DNA of 64,000 bases from Heteronotia binoei (taxonomy: Eukaryota). Numbering within the stretch: the stretch's first letter is position 1; each line of letters opens with the position of its first letter. The notes under the pieces were generated by a model. It searched no databases and was not told where the DNA came from. It was given only the letters and a program-made list of their open reading frames with translations. Below are positions 4,643-62,909 of the stretch, piece by piece. Made by a program: the position numbers and the translations under genes. The DNA is taken from NCBI RefSeq assembly GCF_032191835.1, contig NC_083237.1, positions 23,312,001-23,376,000 of the forward strand, given 5' to 3'.

Positions 4643-5035
4643 CACGGGTGGCCAAACTTGCGTAATGTAAGAACCACTCAGAATAAATGTTAGATGTTTG
4701 AGAGCNNNNNNNNNNNNNNNNNNNNNNNNNNNNNNNNNNNNNNNNNNNNNNNNNNNNNNNNNNNNNNNNNNNNNNNNNNNNNNNNNNNNNNNNNNNNNNN
4801 NNNNNNNNNNNNNNNNNNNNNNNNNNNNNNNNNNNNNNNNNNNNNNNNNAGTGGAAAGAAATCAATTTAACTTTAAATGCATTCTCCAAGTTGCCACTGG
4901 CCTGGCTTGGATAAGTGATTTAAAGAGAGAAATGCTTTCTCCAAGCTGACTGACAGGGCAGTGGGGGCTTTGAAAGCCACACAATATGTGTGAAAGAACC
5001 ACATGTGGCTCCCACGCCATAGTTTGGCCACCCCG
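4643..5035. mobile_element. Non-autonomous hAT element (MITE), TIR ~CAGGGGTGGCCAAACT
   Basis: TIRs at both ends; 8-bp TSD ATCTAGGC at 4635-4642 and 5036-5043; contains the N gap. Confidence 0.85.
4706..4849. other. Assembly gap (144 N)
   Basis: Run of N in the sequence. Confidence 1.
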
Positions 5036-41372: not shown

Positions 41373-41620
41373 TTTAAAACAGAAGACTGGATGTGATAAG
41401 AAGATAGGGTTGTGTGTGTGGGGGGGATGCCATTGAAACAGCAACAGAAGATTAAATCATTATGAAATTGCCCCAGATGCTTCAAGTACTTTTTTAGATT
41501 CCCCCCCTCCAATTTTTGAAAATTTTTGACTCAGAAGAGTCTCTGAGGCAAAAGGCCCTGCATTCTGTAGAAAGCCTGATACTGAAGATCGCTCTGTCTT
41601 TTCTCTTTCCACAGGTGGTG

Positions 41621-41882
41621 ATGTCAGCCGAAGCCACAGCAGACTCGGTCCCACCTCCTGAGGCCTGTGCTCCACTGGTCCCAACCCAGCAGCGCCGGGA
41701 TGGCGGGGGTGGGGTAGCAGGTGCAACCTTTGATCTCAAACCTCTGAACCCCAGCAGCAAGTATGTGAAACTGAACGTAGGAGGGTCCCTCCATTACACC
41801 ACCGTGCAGACCCTCACCAAGCAAGACACCATGCTGAAGGCCATGTTCAGTGGCAGGATGGAAGTGCTGACGGATAGTGAAG
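41621..41882 (+). CDS. KCTD13: KCTD13 coding exon 1 (BTB/POZ, BACURD1)
   Basis: MSAEA...[43 protein letters not shown]; LHYTTV and the 16p11.2 neighbours favour KCTD13 over TNFAIP1/KCTD10. Confidence 0.92.
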
Positions 41883-43066
41883 GTATTTCTTAATTGTTTG
41901 TTTGCTCCACCCTGTAGCTGGTTTGTGGGACAGGAAAGCCAGTAAGCTATCTTAAGTAAATAAAGTGTAGAGGCCAGGCAGGAACTCCACTTAGTTGCAA
42001 AATGGAGCCCGCTCTGTGAATCACATCTGCTGTCCAGTATGGCAGAGGGAGAACTATAAACATTTCAGGTTTTAACCAAACAACTTCTGGGTTCTCTGCA
42101 CACACATGAAAGCTTTGATGGGTTGGAGAAATTTTTTCTTATAAACTTCCACTATTCATTTTACATATTCAGATGTAACTCTGAACTGTTTCCCATCTAG
42201 ATGGGTTAAGTAAATATTTATAGCTTCAAATTCATAAAGTTAAAGATTGTTGGGTAATGTTGTTCCCTGATTTTTTCAAATAACCATGAAGATTTTGAAG
42301 CTGAAATCTAGGTAAGAGCACAAGGGTTTTTGTGACAAGTCGCCTCCTGATATTTTTGAAGTCTTTTTGGTATGTGATTGTTGCTGAAATATTTCAGTGG
42401 GTGATTTTTTAAATAATGGATTTGTTTTACATTCTTTGTGGGTATTGTAAGGCTGTTCTGAGAAGTCTTATATGGAATATCTGGATGAAAATAAGATGAG
42501 AAAAATCAAGAAAAATATTTCCCCCCTGAATACCCAAGAAGCAATCTTGGCTGTTGATGCCTTGTTCCAGTGACCAAAAGACCAGCTGACCATCTTTGAC
42601 ATGGCTCTTGTTGGAAATTAGGTCCTAATTATCCAGCGAATGGCAGGAAGCCTGGCTTAATTTTTTCCTTTACTGATCAGTCTTTTTCTGAGAGGCAGGA
42701 AGGGCTCAGCCGCTGTTCCTTTCCTCTTGTCTCTTACCAGCTGGTTTCCCTCTGTCCCATGGCATTCCTTTATTTTAATTTATAGCCTATGCAGTCCCGA
42801 AGGCTTGTAATTATTTACAATGAGTCATCTGTGTACTTAGCACTTCATAGAGCAATGCACACAGGACCCAGAATAACTAGGAAAAAAACATAAACAAAAC
42901 CTTGATACATTCCCTGAGCATTCAGTTTAAATTTTGCCAGTGGGAATATGAGCATTGGCTTTTTTAAGAGGTCATATTTAGAGGACAAGATCTGAAGATC
43001 ACATTGGCTGTGTATGGCATTCTGGCAGTATTGCAGTTCATAAAGTTCAGGAGCAGACATTAATCA

Positions 43067-43263
43067 GGGGAGGGGCTCTGGCTCAGTGGAAGGACCTCTG
43101 CTTTGCATGCAGAAGGTACCCAGCATCTCCAGTGTAAAAAAAGAACTAGCTACAAGGTGATGTGAAACCTTTGCCTGAGAACCTGGAAAGCCACTGCCAG
43201 CCTGAGTAGACAATAATGACTTTTATAGGCTGGTGGTCTGATTCGGAGTAAGGTAGTTTCATG
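43067..43263 (+). mobile_element. tRNA-derived SINE of a second family
   Basis: GGGGCTCTGGCTCAGTGG (A-box-like) head; tail ...GGTCTGATTCGGAGTAAGGTAGTTTCATG. Confidence 0.55.
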
Positions 43264-44150
43264 GTTACAGAAGCAAGTAGGTTTAGCAAAGCTAAATGAA
43301 ACCAAAGGTCCATTTTGTTCAACATGATTTTTCATACAGTGGCCAGCTCCAGTAACCCAGGAAGGACCACAGGTTTAATGCTAAGGCCTAGGCTTCCCCT
43401 TCGTCCCCACCCCACCAGTGACTGGTATTCAGAGGTCTACTGGCTCTGAACATGGAGCCTTTGGCCATTATGGCAGATAGCCATTGATAGAACTGTCCTC
43501 GATGAATATTTCCAATCCATGTGTTGGGGAATTTTAAAACTCCCTAAGCTAGTGCTCCTCACTGTTTTGTGTTAGTGAATGTTGGATGAAGGAGTTGTTT
43601 CTTCTGCCTATCCTGAATCTCCTGCCTGTTGATTTCACTGACAAATTTATGCAGGCAAACGCTAGTCTTATGTTCAGCTATTTTGAAAAACAGAATTATC
43701 CCTTGAACTTCATAGCAGAAGCTCTGTAACAAAGAGATTCTTCCTATCATAGTTCAAATGCAGTTGAAATTTTGTATTTCAGAGACGAAAGGTCAGGTAC
43801 TTCTTTAAATCCACCCCCCCCCACCAAGTTCTGTGCCAGTTTTATCATTTGCCCTTCAGAATGTCATTCTTAATGGTACAAGCCAAAAACTGTGGCAACA
43901 GACACACAGAATGTAACTATGACTAATAATATAAAACAGTTAACTGGAGTATTGCTAGTTATATGTAGGATTGTTTTTGCAACATCATAAGCAGAATTAA
44001 CTATAGAAATAGTAATATTTGAGTTTTCTTTCTCTTAGTCTACTACAAAACCAAGCAATCTTAAGCCGGATGTGAAACAGGGATGCCTTCTTGTTGCTGT
44101 TCTCCACTCCTCTTCTGGTGGGTCTATAAACATCCATTTGCTCTTGCCAG

Positions 44151-44320
44151 GCTGGATCTTGATTGATAGAAGTGGGCGCCATTTTGGAACCATCCTGAAT
44201 TACTTGCGAGACGGTTCAGTGTCTCTCCCCGAGTCCCAGCGGGAGTTGGAAGAGGTGCTGTCTGAGGCCCGCTACTACCTGATTCAAGGCTTAGTGGAGG
44301 ACTGCCAGCTGGCACTCCAG
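44151..44320 (+). CDS. KCTD13: KCTD13 coding exon 2
   Basis: [23 protein letters not shown]...[16 protein letters not shown]; 170 nt. Confidence 0.95.
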
Positions 44321-44467
44321 GTGAGCATCTCCCTGCTAAGAAATCACAGGAAGTTTAGAATCTCATGCTGTGTTTTTAAAGGGCAGAACAGCAGCTTCTG
44401 AGTCGCCTAATGAGGCTGCAGTGCGCAACTTGCATGTCTTTCTCTTTTTTCCCCCTTCCCTGCTCAG

Positions 44468-44557
44468 CAAAAGAGCGAAGCCTTTGACCCTCTCTGCCAC
44501 ATCCCCATGGTGACGTCTCCAAAGGAAGAGCAGCAGATCATCTCAAGTTGTTCCAAG
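44468..44557 (+). CDS. KCTD13: KCTD13 coding exon 3
   Basis: QKSEAFDPLCHIPMVTSPKEEQQIISSCSK; 90 nt. Confidence 0.95.
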
Positions 44558-45363
44558 GTAAAGCAGTTGTGGAATTGTGTGGGGTGGAGTCCCAGGAAGG
44601 TTGTGTTTGTCAGTGCAGAGAAGGGGAGCTTGCTGGGCTTGTATATTCGGGACCAACACAGCAGTTTTGCTGAAGAACAGATAGCATGGGAAGCTGTCCA
44701 ATATGTCTCCATCCATTTAGGCATAGCTTAGGGGTCCCCAATGTAGCACCCACTGACACCTTTCCTGGGGCCTGCTAAAAAGTGGGTGGGACAGGTGTGC
44801 ATTTGTACAGCTGGGCTTCTGATTGCCCATTAGAAATCTGATTGGCTACAGAGACTTCTAAGATGATATTTTGGTGGCGCCTGCCACCACAACTCAAGGA
44901 TCTTCACCGTGTGACTGAAGGTAAGCTGTGTGCATGCAAGAAAATATTTTTAATTGTATGCTCATTTTAAATGATGTCCTGTTAAGCAGAGCTTCTGCCA
45001 AAAATGTTAAAGAGTTACTACTAATGTTACTGACATTTTCTGGCTGGCTCTGCCTCATTTGGCATCCATTGCCTGGTTGTGCCCACCACTGTATTTCAGA
45101 ATTGCATAGTTGCCCTCAGGCTCAGAAAGGTGGGGGACTCCTGCAGTGGTGTATCCCTTGCCTTGAAGAGTGGGCAAGGTGCAGGTTTTGTGAGACCCCA
45201 GCAGCTTGGCTGGTTAGCAAAACAGGAGGCTAAAAAACAACTTGCATGCAGCAAGCTCAAAACACAGCAGTAGTAAAGGAACAGAAACCACTCTCCTTTG
45301 CTTTCTTTTAGGAAACGTCTGCTGTGTTTCCTTTATCTGTGTGTTTTTCTCTCCTTTGCTTAG

Positions 45364-45416
45364 CCTGTGGTGAAATTGCTGCATAACAGAAGCAACAACA
45401 AGTATTCGTATACAAG
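45364..45416 (+). CDS. KCTD13: KCTD13 coding exon 4
   Basis: PVVKLLHNRSNNKYSYT; 53 nt. Confidence 0.95.
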
Positions 45417-46139
45417 GTAAGGCACATTTTTATTTACATTATTTATAGTCCAACTTTTGCACTGGGGCTCAAGACAGATTATACAGAGTGGTTCATTACA
45501 ATCAACAAAATGTAGCTTTCAAGAAACAATGTAGGACTATTAAGGTTGTAGAAGTCCGGAACCAACCAAAAAAATCTAAAAGATAGAACTGAAGTAAAGC
45601 ACAGTATAAATATTAATATATTTATTTATTTAGGCAATTTATATTTTACCCTTTCCCAAAACGGGCTCAGGGTAGATCACACCATTCTAAAAACAGTATA
45701 AAACAACAGTTAAAAACCAAATCAATGTAATCAATACAATTTGTTAAAGCGTAATAAGTTATAAATAGCGGCTCAGTTGGGCACGTTATATAAACTGAGA
45801 GTCTAAAACAGGAGATAGAGTAAAATTCATATTACAGCAGAGATGGTACCATAGCATAGGGCCAGCCAATGGAATATTAAGTGACATGTTAAGTGATGCA
45901 AAGATTACATGGCAGGAGCCAACTTAGAGCACACAATTGCACGCAGTAGTGCAGACCACAGTCCCTAGTCATTTATCCGAGTAATTTTGTTTTGTGGGAG
46001 AATTTGGTGTATTTCTTGCATCTCCTGTTTATCCACAGCAGATATTCTCACGTTTTTGCTGGTAATGGTGCAGCTTGGAGACTTACCAAGAAATTTTCTG
46101 CCCTCATCCCTGTTCTCTCTCTTCCTCACCCTCATCTAG

Positions 46140-46335
46140 TAACTCCGATGACAACTTGCTGAAGAACATTGAACTCTTTGACAAACTCGCTCTGCGGTTC
46201 AACGGACGGGTGCTCTTCATCAAAGATGTCCTGGGAGACGAGATCTGCTGCTGGTCTTTCTATGGGCAGGGCCGCAAGATCGCCGAAGTCTGTTGCACCT
46301 CTATCGTGTACGCCACTGAGAAGAAACAGACTAAG
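46140..46335 (+). CDS. KCTD13: KCTD13 coding exon 5
   Basis: [65 protein letters not shown]; 196 nt. Confidence 0.95.
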
Positions 46336-46820
46336 GTAACTCACCGTGTATTGTTCCTTGCCATCTCAAGTACTCAGTTTGTAGTAAGAGAGAGCACTTG
46401 CTTTTCCAGTTGATAACTGGAACTCTTAATAGGACCCCTCTCTTTATTTGAATTAGTGTTGGGTAGATTAAAGCTTTATAAGCTGTCCCACAAATCCATG
46501 AGTAGGTACAAAAAGCAAACCTTTTGAAGAGATCAGCATTTTTAAAAAACAGTTTAAATTTAGTTAATGTATTCCAAGAAATGTACAATCTCTTAGTTTA
46601 TTTTGTCTGCCTGCAACCATGTCAAATTTTATGAGGCCTCCACCCCAGTTGATGGACTTGCTATGGTCCATCGTTTTTGTTGTTTGGCTTGTTGCAGTAT
46701 TGAGGTGTGGATGATTTTGCTTTTTAGACTTTCCATGCAGCTAGAATTATTTCTGTATTCCTATTTATAAGGATTAGGATAAATGTTCTCATTTTCTTTG
46801 GGTTGGTATTGGTATTGGGG

Positions 46821-48260
46821 TGGGACAGAAACAGTCCTGGTCGCCCTCATGGATGACCTCCGACGACAACTGGATCGAGGCGGCTCGGCGGTATTGCTGT
46901 TGCTAGACCTATCGGCTGCGTTCGATATGGTCGACCATCGGCTGCTGACCCGCCGCCTCGCCGACGCAGGAATTCGGGGGCTAGCCTTACAGTGGCTCTC
47001 CTCCTTTCTTGATGGTCGGGGACAAAGGGTGGCAATTGGGGGGGAGCTGTCTCAGAGGTACCCACTTCATTGTGGAGTGCCTCAGGGAGCAGTTCTCTCC
47101 CCGATGCTGTTTAACATCTTTATGCGCCCCCTTGCCCAGATTGCACGGAGGTACGGGCTGGGTTGTCATCAATATGCGGATGACACCCAGCTCTATCTAC
47201 TGATGGGCGACCGGGCTGGTGATGTCCCTGCAAATTTGGACCGGGCATTACAAGCCGTGGCTGACTGGCTCAGGCTGAGCGGGCTGAAGTTGAATCCGGC
47301 GAAGACTGAGGTCCTTTGCGTGGGCCGCGGTGGACCAGGAGGGGAGATTACTTTACCGGCCTTTGACGGTGCGCCACTGGTACCAGTGCGCAAAGTCAAG
47401 AGCCTGGGAGTGCTACTGGAGTCCTCCTTATCAATGGAGGCCCAGGTGGCCGCCACTGCTAGATCTGCCTTCTTCCATCTTAAGAGGGCGAGGCAGTTGG
47501 CTCCCTTCTTGGAGCGCACCAACCTAGCAACTGTGATCCACGCAACGGTCACTTCGAGGTTAGACTACTGCAATGCCCTCTACATGGGGCTGCCCTTGTA
47601 CCGAACACGGAGACTTCAGGTAGTCCAGAACGCGGCGGCCAGGCTGCTGGAGGGACTACCATGGTGGGAGCCTGCGCGGCCTGGGCTGCGGAATCTGCAT
47701 TGGCTGCCGGTTGTATACCGTGTTTGCTATAAGGTGCTGGTTATCACCTTTAAAGCCCTATATGGCCGAGGACCTGCCTACCTAAAGGACCGCCTCTCCC
47801 CATATGTGCCCCAGAGAGCACTGAGGTCTAGTTCTCAGAACTTACTAACAATCCCTGGGCCAAGAGAAGTTAGGTTGAAGGCTACTAGGGAGCAGGCCTT
47901 CTCGGTGATAGCCCCTCGTTGGTGGAACGACCTTCCAGAGATGGTGCGAGCCCTGCGGGACCTGAACCAATTCCGCAGGGCTTGCAAAACATTTCTTTTC
48001 CAGCTGGCTTTCGAGATAGAACCTGATTAACCCAACGAGCGGACATCTAGCCGTCTTGTGTACATTATGATTACAGCATTTTAGCACCTATTTTATATAT
48101 TTTACCTATTTTAAATAACTTATTTGTAATTGATATATTTAAATTGTTCATGTTGTTTTATGTGAATCATGGGACTCCCATGTCTGTTAGCCGCCCTGAG
48201 CCCGCCTGGCGGGGAGGGCGGGATATAAAAATAAAATATTATTATTATTATTATTATTAC
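46821..48260 (+). mobile_element. Young 5'-truncated L2-clade LINE (RT domain and 3' UTR) in KCTD13 intron 5
   Basis: Uninterrupted ORF to 48030 with LLLDLSAAFDMVDH, GVPQGAVLSP, YADDTQLY, WLPV motifs; CpGs intact; (ATT)n tail 48237-48258. Confidence 0.92.
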
Positions 48261-48607
48261 TACTACCATTTCCTAGTTGGGCTTGGGGAATGTGCCTGAA
48301 CTACTTGTGCCAGGTCACACAATGATAAGATGGAATTCAAGCTCAGGTCTCCTAGGCCCAATTCCAGTCCTTCCACCTAGCTTAAACTAGCTCCGTTTCA
48401 TTTTATTTTGTCAAATCTTCCCTTTCTCCAGAGTTTGTCAGTGGTTTGTTTGTTTTTTAATATCTTCACATCTAGTATTTGAGGTTAAACAGAATATCAA
48501 TGACATGGCCCAAGCCTTAGTGAATCTGTGTTAGGATTTTACCCTGGAATTCCATGTCAAATCTGACCACTCACACCTTGTGTAACTTCACATTCTCTTG
48601 TGTACAG

Positions 48608-48850
48608 GTGGAGTTCCCTGAGGCAAGGATCTTTGAGGAGACCCTGAACATCCTGATCTATGAGACACCAAGGGTGCCGGATAAGGCCCTGCTGGAAGCA
48701 ACAGGCGGGGTGGCAGGTGGAGGCGGAGGCCTCCTCCGCGCAGGTGATGACGAAGACGGGCGGGAGCACCGTGTCCGGCGCATTCATGTCCGCAGGCATA
48801 TTATGCACGACGAGCGTCCTCATGGTCACCAGGCTGTTTTCAAGGACTGA
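48608..48850 (+). CDS. KCTD13: KCTD13 coding exon 6 (last)
   Basis: VEFPEARIFEETLNILIYETPRVPDKALLEATGG...HRVRRIHVRRHIMHDERPHGHQAVFKD*; spliced CDS 1014 nt = 337 aa. Confidence 0.95.
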   Translation: MEFPEARIFEETLNILIYETPRVPDKALLEATGGVAGGGGGLLRAGDDEDGREHRVRRIHVRRHIMHDERPHGHQAVFKD

Positions 48851-52990: not shown

Positions 52991-53409
52991 GGCAGGCACC
53001 TGAGGGGAGGTTGAGGGGCAACTTTTAATTTAATTTTTATTCGCTTCATACATTAGGCTGTAAACGGCGTGTCTGTTGAGAGTTAGTTTAGGTAACTGAA
53101 ACTTAAGCTACAGCAGAGGGAAAGGAGTCTCCATCCCGGCACTAGAGATTTCCCTTTCTTCCTTTGAAGTGTGGTCGCAAGGCTTCGTAGGAGAAATCTG
53201 TGGAGTCGAACTGACATCTGCTTTGTGTGTGTTTGTGTTTCGGTCTGGCCTTGCCACTTCTAGAAACAGGCTACTAGATTTTAGGGCGGGGGGAGATTGG
53301 CTAGTCACTGTTTCTTAACAGGGTCAGGCTTGAACCAGTGTTGTAGTCAGGCCTTTTGCATCCTTGGGGCTCCTCTGCTGTCACCTGCATCCAAGACTAG
53401 CTTTAGACC

Positions 53410-53521
53410 ATGCAGAAAGAGGAATTGGGCATGGATGAGAACCGCAACCCTGAGGAAGAGCTGCGTCTTCTGGGGGGAAAGAAGGAGAAATGCCATAGCC
53501 TCAGCAACCGCATCCGGACAG
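53410..53521 (+). CDS. NUFIP2-like gene, coding exon 1
   Basis: MQKEELGMDENRNPEEELRLLGGKKEKCHSLSNRIRT+G; donor CAG|gtaaca, phase 1, joins exon 2 in frame (cf. NUFIP2 ...KKKT|GYGELNG). Confidence 0.6.
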
Positions 53522-55485
53522 GTAACAGAAATCCTGGCATTCTGTGCTTGGTCTTTGATGGCATAGAATTTGTTAGATTGATTTTAAAAATCCAGGTTCC
53601 TGCGCATTCAGAGTCTAGCAATTTGCCATTGATAAAGATTTTATTCTTAAAAAATTGCTTTACTCCAGAGAGTAAAGAGTTCTTACTTTCCCTTGTACCC
53701 TTCCATTCTTACCCACCTAGATATCCTTATTTACTTTTAAAATTTATTATACATGCCCTGCTTTTTACTGCAGTGGGGACCCAAAGTGACTTGCATCATT
53801 TTCCTCTCCATTTTATCATCATCAACCCTGTGAGGGAGATTAGGCCGGGAGTCACTCAGCAAGCTTCCATGGCATGAGTGAAGATTTGAGCCTGGATTTC
53901 CCAGATCCTAGTCTGATACATTAACCACTACACCATACTGTCTCCCCATGCAGCCTCCAAATTCATAGTACAAGAGTTTTCTCAGCACATGAAGATGTGC
54001 CACTCTCCTTTTCCTGAGAAAGAGAAATGGGCATCTGGAATGCATTCATCTCTCACCCCATGCCAACTATATTTGAGATAAGATTAGCATGGCTGCAGAT
54101 TCCCGCCCCCCCCCCCCCCCCCCCCAGTACAGCCGGACTGCCTAGTACAAAAAACCCTGCTGTTATCACTAGCCACACTAACCCTTCCACAGAATCCAGG
54201 CATCCACAGTCCTTTTCTCCTCCTTGGTAACTCTGAGTTCACCATGCTACATTTTAGTCCCAGAGAATTAGTTTCTCACTAAGGAAAGTTCAGTCCAGTT
54301 GCTCCAGTTTGAGTTACTGCCCCTTGTAATGTACATCTACGTTATAGCTGTCCTTAATGCCTGTCACTGTTAAGTAAAACCTTCTTTCTGTCATGCAGGA
54401 GCTGGAGCAGAGCTGGGCTACAGGCCAAGCCAGGGCTCCAGAGAAGGTGAATTGGGGACTGGGGCTTTCCCCTTCTGTCATGTTGTTTTGTGTGTGTTTC
54501 TTTCCCAGAAAGCAGCCATGCCTTAGTGCTGGAACAATCATGCACCTCCTAATTCAGTCGGTCTGATCATCTCAACAACTGCTGTTGAGGAATATACATT
54601 GCCCTCTTTCCCATGTACATCTTTGGTGCATGACCCACATCCCCCTCTATACCTTTCACCAGGAATGGTATCTTTAGATTTGATGATTTTCTAAGCCAGT
54701 GTCAAGAGGGAGAAGGCTCATGACATCTGGAAAGCCCTAATTTGCCAAATCATGTAAAGGTGATCCTTTCTGTTGTTTGGATCAGTTTTAGACTCTTCAG
54801 TGGTGGCAGCATTGAAGTATTTGGTTTAAAACACTTGACAAGAAGATTTTGGCCAGTGAAGGAGGGGATCCTTCTGGGTACATGGCTGTAATAGGCACCG
54901 TATGTTCATGTAGCTCCACTCAATTTATTTTTAATCAGTGGTCCCAGTGTCCCCTCTAAGCTGAGTTAGTGTGAGCTAGCTCACAGTTTTTGAGCCTCTG
55001 GCTCACACATTTCTGTCTTGGCTCAGGAAAAAATGGCCCCAGAGCAAACTAGTTTATGCAGTAGCTCACAAAGTAGAATTTTTGTTCACAAGGCTCCACA
55101 ACTTAGAGGGAGTGTTGGTAGGGAGAAATGGATATATATTCTCACCTTTTAAAAAATATGCTCCCCTTCTCTACTTAAAAGGTGCCAGCATTAAGTGCTT
55201 AGATACTGTGGTGACTGGGCATTTAGCATTTTCCGAACCCAGCCCCTGAACGGTACTTGAGCAGTCTGCCTAGTTTTGTTGTATTACAGGAAGAGAGACT
55301 GATAAATCAGCAACAAAAATGGTGCTATACAGGTTTCCCTAAGGGGGCAGTTCCCTGCTTTATGGGTTTACAATCTAAATTTCACAAAAAGGAGGAAGGA
55401 AACCTACAGTCATGTATGGGGGTAGGGTTGGGATATCTGTTATCCATCCAGATGTTGAGTTCACTCCAAAGTCCTTCCACTCTAG

Positions 55486-56325
55486 GTTCCTGGGAGTCCA
55501 ATGGCTATTCTGCATCCTCAGAGATCGCCGATGAGCCCAGTGTTCCCTTGAGCCCGTCTAACAGCCTTAACATCCGCAACCTCCAGTTGTCTGAGCGGGA
55601 CCCTCCAGTTACCCACCACCCCCACCGCTATCCCCATCGCTTCTACCACAGCCGGCCCTTCCACGCAGCTGCCTACCGCAAGACCTACCGAGGCAGCCCC
55701 TCTGACCGCAAAGAATGGGGACCCAGCACCAACGGCTACCACTGTGCTCCTGAAAGCATTTCTAATGGGCGGTGGCAGCACCGGCGCCGTGGCTATTCTG
55801 ACCCACCATCTCCATCGTCATCTCCAGAATCCGAACGAGACAGCACCATCAAAGTCGGAGAGAAGCCTGCCGTTACATCAAATGCCACCAATGCAGCCAA
55901 TGAGGATTCTGGGAAGGAAACATGGTCGCTTTTCCGGCCACTTCCTGCTTTCCCAGTTGATAGCAGCAGTGCCCGAATCATTCCTAAGATCTCTTATGCT
56001 AGCAAGCTGAAAGAGAACTTGGATCAACCAGGGAAAGCCTGCCATGTTCCCGCCTCGGCCGTCCGCACCACCAATAGCCTCCCCAACTGTGTCCTGGCGC
56101 CACCCCCAAGCAGCCCCCCACCATCTGACAGCAGCCGGCAGCAGCACCTGGGAGCCATCTTTCAGAATGAGTGGGGCTTGTCCTTCATCAATGAGCCAGG
56201 AGCAGGGCATGGAGGGGGTGGTGGGACTGCGCCAGAAAAAGATGTGGAGGATGCAAACACTGGAGCGTGCTGGGAGAAAATGGAAGCCAATGACTGGCAA
56301 GCCGCAAGAAATTATCACCTGGAAG
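55486..56325 (+). CDS. NUFIP2-like gene, coding exon 2
   Basis: ETWSLFRPLPAFPVDSSSARIIPKISYASKLKENL and HLGAIFQNEWGLSFINEP match recalled NUFIP2 blocks (WTLFKPPPVFPVDNSSAKIVPKISYASKVKENL; NLGDIFQNQWGLSFINEP). Acceptor ctctag|, donor GAAG|gtaagc. Confidence 0.88.
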
Positions 56326-57046
56326 GTAAGCTGGATAAAAGATCTTGATGTTGCCATCTAGGATGGGCAAGCATGGATGTATGGATTTGAGGGTAGAAGT
56401 AGGAAAATGAATGGGATGTATCAATCTTTTGGGTAGAGTATGTGGGATTGTAGGTGATACGCAAAGATGCTGGGGGCAGAAATGTTCCCGGGGTCAGAAC
56501 AGTGGTTGCAACAAGTAATGGAAGAGATGGTAGAGGAGACAATTCTTGTGATGTCTAAGAACTTGTAAGGAACAAGGGACCAGTGCCAGGCATTCACTGT
56601 TGGCATTTCTCAGCTTTTCATTGTTTAGTATGTGAAAAAGTCTGAGGGTGCCTAGAAACTAGCAAGATTGTAGCATTGGCTTTTGAGGGTTTAGCTAACA
56701 TTTTACACCTCTGGGCTGTATAAAATAGGTTCTGTGTTCTCTAATTCTACAACTTCCCCTGTTTTCTACAGTCAGTACAAATCCCAATGGCCACTTTTAC
56801 ACCGGTTGAATGAAAGCAGTTTGAAGGGCTTTTTCTCCCCCCCCCCCTCCTTTGGGGCGCACAGGAATTGGCATCTGAATCCCAACTCTTAGAACCATTG
56901 AAATGTAGGGACTTCATTTGAGGAGTGAGCTGCCTAAATGTAGCCAAGAGACTAGGAGGGGTAGGTTCTGGGACACACTTTTTGGCACTGGGTACAGCAG
57001 TGCCTGGCTTCTAATTTTCTTCTTTCCTCTCTTCTCCTAATTACAG

Positions 57047-57079
57047 AATGGACTCATATATGGGAGCTACACAGTCAAG
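57047..57079 (+). CDS. NUFIP2-like gene, coding exon 3 (33-nt micro-exon)
   Basis: (E)WTHIWELHSQ vs NUFIP2 EMESIWNLQKQ; long polypyrimidine acceptor, donor AAG|gtaagg. Confidence 0.85.
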
Positions 57080-58170
57080 GTAAGGAATCCCAGACCATCT
57101 TGCTCAGTTATGGCCCCAGTTAACTGCAGATCTCAAACCCTGTGCCATATACCTTGTGCATCTACTTTGTGAAATGATGCCCTATAGTTTCAATAAAAGG
57201 TGTACGGTTGGGCAAACTTGAAGGAATGTCGGGATGTAAAAAATACAATTGGCTATCCCAATCCTAGGACAGAGTGGCCAATTTGCAGCTATCCAAGCAA
57301 TTTTATTTGCGTACCTATGTGCTTTAAAAAAACAACAGCCCTAAAAAGTCATGTTGCTTTTGTTTAAAAAGTATCATTTTCTCCAGTTCTGCTATACTGA
57401 TTTAACATTCCTTCCTTACTTTGGGATGACAGCTTCAGGTTGGGAAATACCTGGAGATTTTGAGGGAGGAACCTGAGGAGGGCAGTGTTTGGGAAGGGGG
57501 GGGGGGGGACTTCAATGGCGTATAATGCCATAGAGTTCACTTTCCAAAGCAGCCATTTTCTCCAGGTGAATGATCTCTGTTGCCTGGAGATCAGTTGTAA
57601 TCCCATGAGATCTCCAGCCACCACCTGAAAATTGGAAACCCTATGCCGCAGCCTTGCACAGACGTAATAAGCTCCATAACAGTGGGATCCTTACTGCTGG
57701 GTGGTGCTGGCTTTATTCTAGAATCTGATCAGCCTTTGCTGGACTGTATATTACAGTACTTCTAGTGCCCCAAGGGGACCCCCCCCCCCACCTCCCAATA
57801 GAGTGGATCCTGAGAATACAGACATTAATTATAGCCCCTTGAGGTTTCTGTCTCTGCAATTTGCAGGTTAAGAGAGTATGGGGAGGGGGGGTTAGATGAA
57901 GAAACTATACATCAGGAAGACCTAGAGCTACTGGCGTCATTATCTAGCTTGTGGGGAAAGGGGTGAGGATGAGGTTGCTTAAGATTAATTCAGCCAAGCC
58001 ATGTGAGAACTGCATCTAGGGAAATAATAAGGCAGCATATGTTGACCATTTTAATACAGTATGAGAATGGAGGTGGGAAGTGAGAATAGATATTGGAATG
58101 TGCACACTGCCTATAGCCCCTCTCTTGTTGTTCTACTGCATTATCAGTTTCTGTTCTTTTCTCCGTACAG

Positions 58171-58220
58171 CTCCTAGCAAAGTGACGGTCTATATGGACA
58201 CCTTGGATGGGAAGGGTTAA
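58171..58220 (+). CDS. NUFIP2-like gene, coding exon 4 (last)
   Basis: (A)PSKVTVYMDTLDGKG* vs NUFIP2 DPKRIITYNEAMDSPDQ*; strong acceptor ttttctccgtacag|; AATAAA at 58507; spliced CDS 1035 nt = 344 aa. Confidence 0.8.
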
Positions 58221-59614
58221 CACCAAGGATTCCTTGGGGAAGCACTGCTAAGATCCGGGGGGTGGGGGGGGCACAGGGGGAGAGGCAAGGCACCCCCCCC
58301 CACCCCACGAAGACTGGAGAAGCCCAGGCATCTTGAAAGGGGAAGCTACGCCACCTGCCTCCCTTCCTCCCTCTCTCATCCTAATGCTGTTATAGCCCAA
58401 ATTGTCCTGGATGGGGCTGATGTCTCACCCTCCCCGCCCCCTCTGATTTAATGCTCTGGTTTTTAATTTCTTCAGATGGTTTTTAATTTCTCTGGATTCC
58501 CCTGAAAATAAAAGTGAAAAAAAGAATTTATTTAAATTCACCTCTCTGTTTGTATGTGTTTTTGTTTCTTATCCAGTGTACTCTGGGATGATCAGGACAA
58601 CTCATGCAGTTAGGGAAGGAGAGAGATGAAAATCTAATCGGAATTCCTAGTAGCAGAGAAAAGATCATGGGCATCACTAGGAGGAAGCAAAAATATTTGA
58701 TTTAGAAACCAGGTTGTTGTTTGAATATCTGATTACTACTAGATGTTGAGGAGGTTCCTTGACATCTACAGGGGCAAAGTTTTCCTTTCTGTTCAGGTGT
58801 ACTCCTTTTCCCAGTGAGGGGAGAAGCCAATGTGTCTTTTCCCTCAGTGATTCTTTTGAAGGTACACATTTACAACCTGGAAGCCAACTGGGTTACCTAG
58901 AATAGGGGATATGGAACCTTTTGGGCCCAAGTGCTGGAACATCCGTGTTGGTGCACCATCAAAATAAAAGCATGGAATGTGTGTGTGAGATACTAAACAG
59001 CCTGTTGGACTGACTCCTTTTAAACGCATATCATTCTTTTATTTAAAAAAAAACAAACAAACCTGGGAGTTGGTGCTGGCAGTCAGTTGCTATAATAAGA
59101 GCAGTCAGTTGATACTGGGTGTGCCTGGATTGGTTTATGTTAGGAAACAACAGAAGTAACTTGCTGTATCCTGGGGAAGACTGGCCATGGCAACGCAAAT
59201 AGCTCCTTGCTGTGGTGAGGGAGAGTTCTGTAGTAATAATGATCATTTTCTGGGTCTTGAATTAACCTAAACAACTACCACTAGGGTCACCAGGTCCTTG
59301 TTGAAAATACCTGGAGACTTGGGAAGTCAAGCCAGGAAAGGGTGGGGTTTCAGGAGGGGAGGGTCCTCAGCATGGTACAGTGCCATAGAGCCCATCCTTC
59401 AAAGCAGCCATATTCTCCAAGAGAGCTGATCTCTGCCAGCTGTAGATCAGTTGTAAAAGCGGGAGATCTCCAGGCCCCACCTGGAGGCTGGAAACCCTAA
59501 CTTCCATTCAGAGCGAATATTCCATAGGAGCAACATGATGGCTCTACAGCTTCATTTCAGTCTGGGTTTGGGGATGGAAACCATCTTGTTTGTCCTGACT
59601 GATGTCCTTTGTCA

Positions 59615-60248: not shown

Positions 60249-62909
60249 ATGGCTCAGCAACAGCTTGGAGTAGCCGTTGAGAAGCTCACCTCAGCCAACT
60301 ACGCGGTGTGGAGCCTGAGAATGCAACACTACCTCAAGCGTGAAGGGCAATGGCTGTTCGTGAGTAACCCCCCTGCTGACTTATCTCCTGCCGAGACTGT
60401 GTTATCGGATAAGGCACTGGCCAACATAGTGCTATCTATAGGAGATGACCAGCTGGTTTATGTGCGAGGGAAGGACACTCCCAAGGCTGCCTGGGACGCG
60501 TTGAGTGCGGTGCATGTTAGCACCACTGCTGGTTCCCTCATGGCCTTGACAAGGAGGATGTTCCGCACCGTTATGCCGGCTGGAGGGTGTGTGAAAGATC
60601 ACATCAAACGGCTAACGGACTGTTTCGTTGAGCTGGAGGGAAGAGGCAAGACTGTAGCTCCAGACGACAGAGTGTACGTTTTGCTGTCGTCGTTGCCACC
60701 TGAGTACACTCCCCTGATAACTTCTCTGGAGACGGTGGACGTAGCGACCCTGACCATGGAATACGTCTGTGCCCACCTGCTTGACTTCCAAGAGAGAATT
60801 GCGGCCGTGAGCTGTCCGGGGGTGTCGGCCAGGCAGCGTGCTGTTATCGGTGTGTCCGGGAAGACAGCCAAGAATGAGCCAGCTTCTGCTGCTGGCAGGC
60901 GTCCGAAGGTGGAGGAAGTGGAGCCGACTGCGTTTGCAGTCCGTCGCTGCTATGGATGCGGGTCGTCGCAGCACCTGCTCCGAGCTTGCCCTGAGAGGGA
61001 GAAGAGGCGGGGGCGTGTGCGGCGAGAGCGGAGGACCGCCAGCCCGTGTGAGGAAGCAACCCGGCTGGTCACGTCTGCAGTAGAGAGCACAGGGTCTGCT
61101 TGGATTTTAGACTCCGGGGCAACGAGCCATCTCTGCTGCGAGAAGGAGTTGTTGAAAAACATTGACAGTCCTGAGCATAAGTATGTGAGATTGGCTGATG
61201 GGACCACTGCCAATTCTGTTTGCTCAGGCAATGTGGAATTTCCTGCACTGAAATGTATGTTGCAAAATGTGTTGTATGTACCCTCACTGCAGTCTAACCT
61301 GTTGAGTGTTAGCACACTGTTTGACCAGGGATACCAGGTGAGATTTGAGAAAACCTGCTGCAAAATCCTGGGAGGTGGGGGAAAGTTGCTTGTGACAGGA
61401 AAGAGGGAAGGTAAACTGTATGTGGTCCAGAGTGATTGTGCCCAGGTGGCTCAGGTGTCGAATGAGCCTGTGCACAATAATTGTATACATTTGCTCCATA
61501 GGAGACTTGGGCACTGCGGATTTAGGGCGTTAAAGAAAACCCTGGAGCTTGTGCCTAGTTTGAAAGTAAATCCTTGCAAATGTTACTTGGATTGCCAGGT
61601 CTGCAAGAAGACCAAAAGCAAGGCGTGTGCTGTTGCTAAAGAAAGCTCAAGGGAAAGCACACGAGCCCTGGAACTAGTCCATTTAGACGTTATTGGCCCA
61701 TTGCCAAAGAGTCTGTCGGGGAGGAGATACTGCTTGGTGGCCACCGACGACCACACGAGGTACGCGTGGGTTTTCACCATGGTGCATAAGTCTGAGGTGT
61801 ATAAGACATTCACCAAGTGGGTCAAAGCAGTGGAGAGACAATTAGGGGTTAATCTCCTAGCTGTACAAACCGACAGAGGGGGGGAATTCTTATCTAACCA
61901 GATGAAACGTTGGCTGGAAAACAAGGGCATTGCCCACCGTCTGACGAACCCAGCAACGCCCCGAGAAAATGGGCATGGGGCTGTATTGCAGAATGTGATG
62001 TATTGCATGTTAGAGGATGCACAACTGCCAATGACCTATTGGGCAGAAACCATACATGCAGCTGTTTTTTTGCAAAACAGGGTTTGGTGTAATACTGTGA
62101 AAAATGTGCCTTACAGGTTACTGTTGAACAAGACCCCAGATTTGAGTTCTTTAAAAGTCTTTGGGTCACGGGCTCGGGTTGGCATCCACTCCACGAGTAG
62201 CGGGGAGGGGGATGTCCGGGCAGAGAGCCTAATTTTTCTGGGCTACAAGCCAAGGGCCAGGTGTTATCGTTTCTGCAATAGCAAAAGCAAGATAACACTT
62301 AATAAGAGTGCCCAGTTCAATGAAGAAAGCAGCTGGCCAAGGTTGCACTCCTTGCAGAAACAATTTGTCCTGCTGCCAAGTAGCGATAACGATGTTGGAG
62401 CGCAGCCCAGAACTCCAGCCCAGGAGGTGGCACCCAGTGGGGCTGGAGAAGGTGAGCCGAATGCTGGCACAGAGCCTGACGAGCAGAGTCAGGAGGCAGA
62501 GCCTCAAATGCAGGAACTGGAGGTAAAGTGTGAGAGTCAGGAGGTTCAACACCCAATTACAGGGGCAGAGCAACCAGCCCAGGAGGTGGGAACAGAGCAA
62601 CCCGAAGAAGACAAAGCTGGTCCAAGCACAGGGCCACGGGTGTCTGCCAGGTCCACCAAAGGCCAACGTCCCGCTAGGTACAAGTGTCCCTATGTCACTC
62701 TGACTGTCAATCCAGACCCACCCGGATTTGAGGAAATGTTAAAAGAAAAGGCTAAGAAATGGAAAGCCTGGGTGGCAGAGTGCGAGGCAAGGGAGAAGGA
62801 GGCTGAAGCCAAGCGTCTGAAAGAGCTGGCTGAACAGGAACACGATGATGTGTTTTACAATCATGATGAGTTCCTGAACGAATTCCGGAAAGGGTTCCGA
62901 GCTACGTAA
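60249..62909 (+). CDS. Copia Gag-protease-integrase polyprotein (886 aa), no RT/RNase H
   Basis: KLTSANYAVWS (Gag N-term), CYGCGSSQHLLRAC zinc knuckle (60948-60989), WILDSGATSH protease (61110), HRRLGH...CQVC HHCC, LVHLDVIGP and QTDRGGEF integrase core. Confidence 0.95.
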   Translation: MAQQQLGVAVEKLTSANYAVWSLRMQHYLKREGQWLFVSNPPADLSPAETVLSDKALANIVLSIGDDQLVYVRGKDTPKAAWDALSAVHVSTTAGSLMALTRRMFRTVMPAGGCVKDHIKRLTDCFVELEGRGKTVAPDDRVYVLLSSLPPEYTPLITSLETVDVATLTMEYVCAHLLDFQERIAAVSCPGVSARQRAVIGVSGKTAKNEPASAAGRRPKVEEVEPTAFAVRRCYGCGSSQHLLRACPEREKRRGRVRRERRTASPCEEATRLVTSAVESTGSAWILDSGATSHLCCEKELLKNIDSPEHKYVRLADGTTANSVCSGNVEFPALKCMLQNVLYVPSLQSNLLSVSTLFDQGYQVRFEKTCCKILGGGGKLLVTGKREGKLYVVQSDCAQVAQVSNEPVHNNCIHLLHRRLGHCGFRALKKTLELVPSLKVNPCKCYLDCQVCKKTKSKACAVAKESSRESTRALELVHLDVIGPLPKSLSGRRYCLVATDDHTRYAWVFTMVHKSEVYKTFTKWVKAVERQLGVNLLAVQTDRGGEFLSNQMKRWLENKGIAHRLTNPATPRENGHGAVLQNVMYCMLEDAQLPMTYWAETIHAAVFLQNRVWCNTVKNVPYRLLLNKTPDLSSLKVFGSRARVGIHSTSSGEGDVRAESLIFLGYKPRARCYRFCNSKSKITLNKSAQFNEESSWPRLHSLQKQFVLLPSSDNDVGAQPRTPAQEVAPSGAGEGEPNAGTEPDEQSQEAEPQMQELEVKCESQEVQHPITGAEQPAQEVGTEQPEEDKAGPSTGPRVSARSTKGQRPARYKCPYVTLTVNPDPPGFEEMLKEKAKKWKAWVAECEAREKEAEAKRLKELAEQEHDDVFYNHDEFLNEFRKGFRAT

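Follow-up and report, generated by a model that had tools for sequence, protein, structure and literature searches.

An ancient, compact sister gene of NUFIP2 expressed beside KCTD13 in Heteronotia binoei

NUFIP2 (82-FIP) is a hub of stress granules and ribonucleoprotein (RNP) regulation, with the partners FMRP, Roquin, G3BP, DDX6 and ATXN2L, and because it is almost wholly disordered its important parts are hard to tell. A 64,000-nucleotide (nt) stretch of Heteronotia binoei contig NC_083237.1, here called the window and the source of all coordinates below, raises the question of whether vertebrates hold a second, much shorter gene of this family and, if so, where it came from. On the forward strand of the window, next to a KCTD13-like gene, lies what a first-pass annotation had taken for a half-length NUFIP2 paralogue, a whole-genome-duplication sister retained in squamates and lost in mammals. 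Our analysis indicates that this is very probably a functional, expressed and spliced gene for a compact (344 or 360 amino acids, aa) NUFIP2-family protein, disordered over almost its whole length, and the ancient sister of canonical NUFIP2. We refer to its clade, the NUFIP2-like sister clade, as type L.

The gene is assembled from four exons with canonical GT..AG borders, which splice into a 1035-nt open reading frame (ORF) of 344 aa plus a TAA stop, beginning at the first ATG 3' of an in-frame upstream stop codon (Table 1). Coordinates, borders and ORF were as first annotated, but a 48-nt cassette exon had been missed, the in-phase inclusion of which yields a 360-aa isoform alongside the 344-aa form. 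The cassette DNA is 97.7% identical to that of Rhineura, and both Rhineura and Sceloporus have 360-aa models of isoform X1. RNA data from the same species over 53300-58600, comprising two transcript-contig sets and two raw-read RNA-seq runs (X21 and X22), show that spliced transcripts exist: each junction is seen, with GT..AG ends, in both reads and contigs, the exons are found joined in contigs of 1892 and 2130 nt, and the isoforms with and without the cassette are at similar levels in run X22. Read depth is 15-60 per bin over the main exon and approximately zero in the repeat-free flanking intron bins. The transcript contigs hold some 650-700 nt more 5' of position 53300 (record starts at 650 and 698), and an AATAAA at 58507-58512 lies beside the transcript ends (58502-58509). 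Two intronic stretches, 54893-55246 and 57371-57724, reach a summed contig depth of up to ~30,000, compared with ~45 on exons, with many loose ends and variants; these are copies of abundant transcribed interspersed repeats.

The main exon alone matches the Pfam NUFIP2 family (PF15293) at 100.2 bits (E = 1.8e-28, curated gathering cut-off 27). The protein carries the conserved blocks FPVD...KISYASKVKENL, IFQNxWGLSFINEP and a C-terminal YH..E..IW.L...DP.R..Y, and the three NUFIP2-like blocks recognised at first pass are all present in the translation. Across 56 type L and canonical sequences the invariant columns are F193, P194, V195, S198, A200, P204, S207-K211, K213, G260, N265, W267-I272 and Y314, so that WGLSFI and FPV..S.A...P..SYASK.K are invariant throughout. 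The gene structure is also shared. In the canonical NUFIP2 of Rhineura floridana, intron 1 lies in phase 1 in the Gly codon before YGELNG (GSWESNG in type L), and the large exon ends ...YHIQ plus G and is followed by a 33-nt phase-1 exon and then by a last coding piece of 53 nt including the stop. All three intron positions and phases (all phase 1) are common to this gene and the window gene, bearing out the NUFIP2-like phasing first proposed, micro-exon included, and a homologous 33-nt exon is also found in alligator type L. With three introns in common with canonical NUFIP2, the window gene is not a retrocopy. Neither is it itself canonical. The canonical length (~600-700 aa) and the motifs ITNGY and GSGSESGYTTPKKRK are lacking in the window gene, and in a motif scan no type L sequence has either motif, whereas both occur in canonical ones. 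Compared with Rhineura type L the window gene shows 92% identity, and compared with canonical NUFIP2 only ~30%.

A word-indexed search recovered orthologues 78-92% identical to the window protein in Rhineura, Podarcis, Tiliqua, Salvator, Sceloporus, Candoia, Naja and Pseudonaja, of 344 or 360 aa (isoforms X2 and X1), with the ORF intact in all squamates sampled. Identity is 41-51% in turtles and ~40% in frogs and caecilians, whose proteins are 400-460 aa long. When a HMMER profile of these proteins was run exhaustively over 1.84 billion representatives, only 74 family representatives were found (one of them, P0079, left unplaced), and these form two classes by motif, type L with an N-terminus of DENxNP, SWExNG and PLSPSNSLNIRN, and canonical with ITNGY and GSGSESGYTTPKKRK. 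Exact-sequence look-ups of three entries (P0002, P0105 and P0079) gave no recorded match. The MQKEELGMDENRNPEE... encoded by exon 1 is an N-terminal motif found only in type L, and the DENxNP of this exon is kept from paddlefish to alligator. Cluster look-ups added type L members from Pleurodeles, Protopterus, Latimeria, Acipenser, Polyodon, Amia, Chanos, Thalassophryne (named after zebrafish si:ch211-214j24.10), Paramormyrops and basking shark. Judged by its sequences, then, type L is kept from sharks to reptiles, in sharks, ray-finned fishes, coelacanth, lungfish, amphibians, turtles, squamates and alligator. The retention first ascribed to squamates is in fact vertebrate-wide, while the idea of an ancient sister gene holds, with whole-genome duplication its likely, though unproven, source. 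Bearers of type L that also have canonical NUFIP2 include Carettochelys, Pelusios, Xenopus, Hymenochirus, Geotrypetes, Rhinatrema, Pleurodeles, Latimeria and Polyodon, and canonical NUFIP2 occurs in sharks and a chimaera as well.

The gene tree agrees with this division. A 68-row tree (IQ-TREE, LG+C20) splits type L (30 rows) from canonical NUFIP2 (38 rows) at a Shimodaira-Hasegawa-like approximate likelihood ratio test (SH-aLRT) value of 100, and in a 43-row tree the canonical clade, supported at 100/100, leaves the window gene outside. The gene is thus a paralogue and not the NUFIP2 orthologue, as had been proposed, and species that hold both genes say the same. It falls inside the squamate type L clade (94/99), which is sister to turtles and alligator (100/99) and then to amphibians (100/99); deeper in type L lie lobe-finned fishes, ray-finned fishes and shark, and both clades roughly track the species tree. 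Among the other members, two caecilians each encode a pair of distinct type L proteins on one chromosome-scale contig (Rhinatrema P0026/P0033 and Microcaecilia P0029/P0037), probably tandem duplicates. In the ~300-aa type L proteins of Chanos, Amia and Thalassophryne, block 1 has diverged (FPVKDSPAKLQPAVSYASKVK). No neighbour domains came up when the fused models of sturgeon, mormyrid and coelacanth were scanned against Pfam.

The genomic setting conforms to the 16p11.2-like block in which the gene was first placed. Genes in the window run in the order ASPHD1-like Asp/Arg-hydroxylase (+), PAXIP1_C PAGR1 (-), KIF22-like kinesin (+), KCTD13-like BTB_2 gene (+) and type L (+), and the BTB exons are 80-98% identical to those of the BTB_2 gene flanking turtle type L. 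In turtle the order is a C2 gene, BTB_2 (-), type L (+) and TMEM219 (+), in Rhineura BTB_2 (+), type L (+) and TMEM219 (+), and in alligator a Sushi/CUB SEZ6L2-like gene (-), BTB_2 (-), type L (+) and a 1234-aa TAOK2-sized gene (+). We take this neighbourhood to follow the human 16p11.2 gene order, except that an additional gene stands between KCTD13 and TMEM219. Human NUFIP2 presumably lies at 17q11.2 among TAOK1, SEZ6 and TNFAIP1, paralogues of the type L neighbours, and in Rhineura type L and canonical NUFIP2 are on different chromosomes. As cartilaginous and bony vertebrates are present in both the type L and the canonical clade, the duplication is older than the cartilaginous/bony split, which fits an ohnologue of the two rounds (2R) of whole-genome duplication. 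We conclude that the duplication preceded this divergence and most likely occurred in the 2R duplications, a step of interpretation beyond the gene structure, splicing, family, clade, synteny and purifying selection, all of which the data show.

Might the gene instead be a transcribed but decaying relic without protein function? Type L is lost in some lineages, shrunken in alligator and predicted to be disordered, as a relic might be, but its coding sequence has evolved under evident constraint. The ratio of nonsynonymous to synonymous substitution (dN/dS) against Rhineura, proposed as a check at first pass, is 0.09 over the full 1083-nt coding sequence (dS 0.48, dN 0.043) and 0.05 over the N-terminal 100 codons, and block 1 differs by nine synonymous and no nonsynonymous changes. 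This purifying selection, the ORF intact in all squamates sampled and precise splicing with a conserved alternative cassette make a relic hardly credible. A shortened duplicate or retrocopy of NUFIP2 specific to squamates or sauropsids would account for the half length, confirmed here as 344/360 aa compared with ~700 aa, and lineage-specific NUFIP2-like copies do exist in marsupials. However, the three introns are those of NUFIP2, fish and amphibian orthologues bear the same N-terminal motifs, and the canonical clade excludes the window gene with full support; already refuted by the tree, such an origin can be set aside with near certainty.

Several observations nevertheless weigh against an ancient sister gene born of whole-genome duplication. 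Co-existence of type L and canonical NUFIP2 was shown in other squamates; in this genome itself the window gene could in principle be the sole NUFIP2, a truncated orthologue moved beside KCTD13. Six other squamates (Rhineura, Tiliqua, a lacertid (Lacerta/Zootoca), Naja, Candoia and Salvator) have both genes, and this and the identity to Rhineura type L, so far above that to canonical NUFIP2, make a sole orthologue exceedingly improbable. The 74 family representatives include no recognised homologue from cyclostomes or invertebrates, and the tree is rooted by species content, with no outgroup. No TAOK1/SEZ6/TNFAIP1-type neighbour is found within 10 kb of canonical NUFIP2 in Rhineura (no neighbour at all) or a flatfish (a ligand-gated channel), and no 16p11.2-type neighbour within 10 kb of type L in Xenopus tropicalis (only an NDK gene), Chanos (AIG1 and TsaD genes) or paddlefish; the synteny first looked for is seen in lizard, amphisbaenian, turtle and alligator, and not within these 10-kb flanks in frog, milkfish or paddlefish. 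A duplication node undated by outgroup or cyclostome sequence, and synteny not recovered in the 10-kb flanks on the canonical side or visible in frog, teleost and paddlefish on the type L side, would suit an origin by small-scale (segmental or tandem) duplication in an early vertebrate, the KCTD13/TAOK2 neighbourhood of this ancient paralogue being secondary. Such an origin is unlikely, though not negligibly so, given that both clades hold cartilaginous and bony vertebrates and that type L sits among a SEZ6L2-like gene, KCTD13 and a TAOK2-sized gene, the presumed paralogues of which surround NUFIP2 at 17q11.2 in the classic signature of an ohnologue block. Two further points concern the wider account: the absence in birds and mammals was judged from predicted proteins only, and block 1 is lost or altered in alligator and teleost type L, so this motif is not essential to every member.

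Table 1. Features of the type L gene, its splice junctions and its upstream neighbour (window coordinates)
Feature	Position	Strand	Evidence or note	Reads X21/X22	Contigs
5' UTR (untranslated region)	53300..53409	+	covered by transcript contigs (53300-53518/9)		
Coding exon 1, 112 nt, phase-1 end	53410..53521	+	ATG at 53410; GT donor; junctions 53521>54399 and 53521>55486		
Alternative cassette exon, 48 nt, 16 aa, in phase	54399..54446	+	AG/GT borders, frame kept, RNA-seq junctions		
Main exon, 840 nt, phase 1 at both ends	55486..56325	+	borders, Pfam NUFIP2 match, RNA depth		
PLSPSNSLNIRN in main exon	55545-55595	+	translation		
Block 1, WSLFRPLPAFPVDSSSARIIPKISYASKLKENL, in main exon	55923-56021	+	translation		
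VPASAVRTTNSLPNC in main exon	56046-56090	+	translation		
Block 2, HLGAIFQNEWGLSFINEPGAG, in main exon	56145-56207	+	translation		
Start of C-terminal helix in main exon	from 56292	+			
Micro-exon, 33 nt, phase 1 on both sides, (E)WTHIWELHSQ, middle of C-terminal helix	57047..57079	+	junction reads		
Last coding piece, 50 nt, APSKVTVYMDTLDGKG, stop TAA	58171..58220	+	ORF and junction reads		
3' UTR	58221..58509	+	molecule end at 58502, one contig reaching 58509		
Junction exon 1 to cassette	53521>54399			4/6	X1 only
Junction cassette to main exon	54446>55486			4/23	X1 only
Junction with cassette skipped	53521>55486			7/24	X2 only
Junction main exon to micro-exon	56325>57047			10/23	X1 and X2
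Junction micro-exon to last piece	57079>58171			17/18	X1 and X2
KCTD13-like BTB gene, upstream neighbour and synteny anchor	41516..48850	+	Pfam BTB_2 on two exons		

The ancient-sister reading implies that type L was lost from some vertebrate groups. No bird, monotreme or placental type L is among the 74 representatives of the exhaustive profile search, which covered predicted proteomes only, and GC-rich microchromosome genes of birds are often missed. We infer, on good grounds but short of a demonstration, that the gene was lost in mammals and birds; the mammalian loss first proposed stands to the extent that predicted placental and monotreme proteomes hold no type L. NUFIP2-like proteins of marsupials were considered as a mammalian type L and rejected, as their long branch is nested among the canonical NUFIP2 sequences of mammals. 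This extra marsupial gene (Petaurus, Vombatus and Monodelphis; P0094, P0095 and P0100) encodes fast-evolving proteins of 535-609 aa and is a separate, lineage-specific duplication.

At the other extreme of size, Alligator mississippiensis has an intact type L gene of only 145 aa (locus L009:10001-10765), with exons 1, 3 and 4 of 112, 33 and 50 nt as in the window. Its main exon is 243 nt compared with 840 nt, the N-terminal half and block 1 (FPVD...KISYASK) being gone and block 2 and the C-terminal helix kept. Public models of the alligator gene are misjoined with downstream sequence and bear the names 'translation initiation factor IF-2' and 'ESX-1 secretion-associated protein EspI'.

What might so small a protein do? 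AlphaFold2, applied to the Podarcis orthologue with a 56-sequence alignment, predicts disorder except for one helix (residues 305-328) at a predicted local distance difference test (pLDDT) score of 91-96, and a profile search of the PDB found no solved chain related by sequence. Five short blocks are common to type L and canonical NUFIP2, and two of these coincide with experimentally mapped regions of the human protein. Human NUFIP2 F511 is reported to mediate binding to the G3BP1 NTF2-like domain (bioRxiv preprint 10.1101/2025.11.30.691455), and in 695-aa mammalian orthologues position 511 falls on the Phe of the block 2 motif WGLSF. Roquin binds a NUFIP2 fragment of aa 255-411 (PMC5775257), and block 1, at 335-367 of NUFIP2, lies inside it.

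These coincidences suggest that type L could be a small adaptor of short linear motifs for the same RNP machinery as NUFIP2. Through its invariant Phe, block 2 (IFQNxWGLSFI) would bind the G3BP1/2 NTF2-like domain, as human NUFIP2 is reported to do through F511, while block 1 (FPVDxSxA..PKISYASKxKENL), matching the core of the Roquin-binding fragment, would serve as a Roquin-type dock. The C-terminal amphipathic helix and the type-L-specific N-terminus (DENRNPE, SWESNG and PLSPSNSLNIRN) might bind further partners. We infer all of these partners from motif homology. NUFIP2 has low-complexity stretches rich in His/Gln and in Ser; these are missing from type L, which may therefore bring the same RNP partners together at a lower condensate-forming valency.

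A broader proposal, which we advance tentatively and would put at slightly short of an even chance, is that vertebrates ancestrally had two NUFIP2-family adaptors, that type L still docks G3BP via WGLSF, and that it was lost independently in birds and mammals and pared to a 145-aa core in crocodilians; the resulting natural deletion series of ~700, ~450, 344 and 145 aa would point to block 2 plus the C-terminal helix as the functional core that this otherwise disordered family cannot dispense with. A half-length member held under strong purifying selection for more than 400 million years is an evolutionary filter for NUFIP2, leaving the five shared blocks, and the alligator protein narrows the core of the family further. 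Since the type L locus is flanked by KCTD13 and TMEM219/TAOK2, a gene that Xenopus and probably zebrafish still have would have been lost from the human 16p11.2 neurodevelopmental interval, which is relevant to modelling the region in these animals.

The surroundings of the gene differ in some respects from those in other species. Over 11406-48850 gene order and orientation are unlike those of turtle, alligator and human. KCTD13 is tail-to-head with type L in the window but head-to-head in turtle and alligator, a rearrangement that is probably squamate-wide, since Rhineura has the same lizard orientation. TMEM219 was not seen downstream of type L before the end of the window; a Copia-type long terminal repeat (LTR) element lies there instead, 2 kb downstream of type L, with an 886-codon ORF (60249-62909) that has gag, beta-barrel (protease-region), pre-integrase, integrase and SH3-like domains and no reverse-transcriptase match. 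A 415-codon ORF with an RVT_1 match (96 bits) in one of the introns of the KCTD13-like gene (46783-48030) looks like a fragment of LINE (long interspersed nuclear element) type. A run of 144 N at 4706-4849 is an assembly gap or masked stretch.

How does type L compare with what is already on record? Database entries of the same gene appear as 'uncharacterized protein LOC...' in squamates and turtles, as 'FMR1-interacting protein NUFIP2-like' in frogs, salamander and lungfish, as XB5854344 in Xenopus and as the teleost relatives of zebrafish si:ch211-214j24.10, but these are automatic predictions without name, paper or function. No paper under five of its names was found in 8.4 million full texts, a literature search on the 16p11.2/17q11.2 paralogon returned nothing, and one on the region of 82-FIP that binds FMRP yielded no usable result. 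Type L is an unnamed member of a known family, already in public annotation, and not a new kind of biology. Among ligands of the G3BP NTF2-like domain, which include the FGDF motifs of alphavirus nsP3 and USP10 and the Caprin1 and UBAP2L peptides, its block 2 has the Phe reported as a G3BP1 contact in human NUFIP2, a likeness that would come to type L solely by way of its homology to NUFIP2.

The closest comparison is with canonical NUFIP2 itself. The two share a Pfam family, an exon-intron plan down to the 33-nt micro-exon, a largely disordered prediction and five blocks, namely GxxExNG at intron 1, W.LF.P.P.FPVD.S.A...PKISYASK.KENL, VP.SA.K/R.., LG.IFQN.WGLSFI.EP and the C-terminal YH..E...IW.L....P.R/K...Y helix region. 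They differ in that type L, at about half the length in the window, is without three parts of NUFIP2 (a His/Gln-rich N-terminus, the segment ITNGY...GSGSESGYTTPKKRK and a long linker rich in Ser) and has a conserved N-terminus of its own (MQKEELGMDENRNPEE, SWESNG and PLSPSNSLNIRNLQ). Type L forms a separate clade, and its locus is 16p11.2-like rather than 17q11.2-like.

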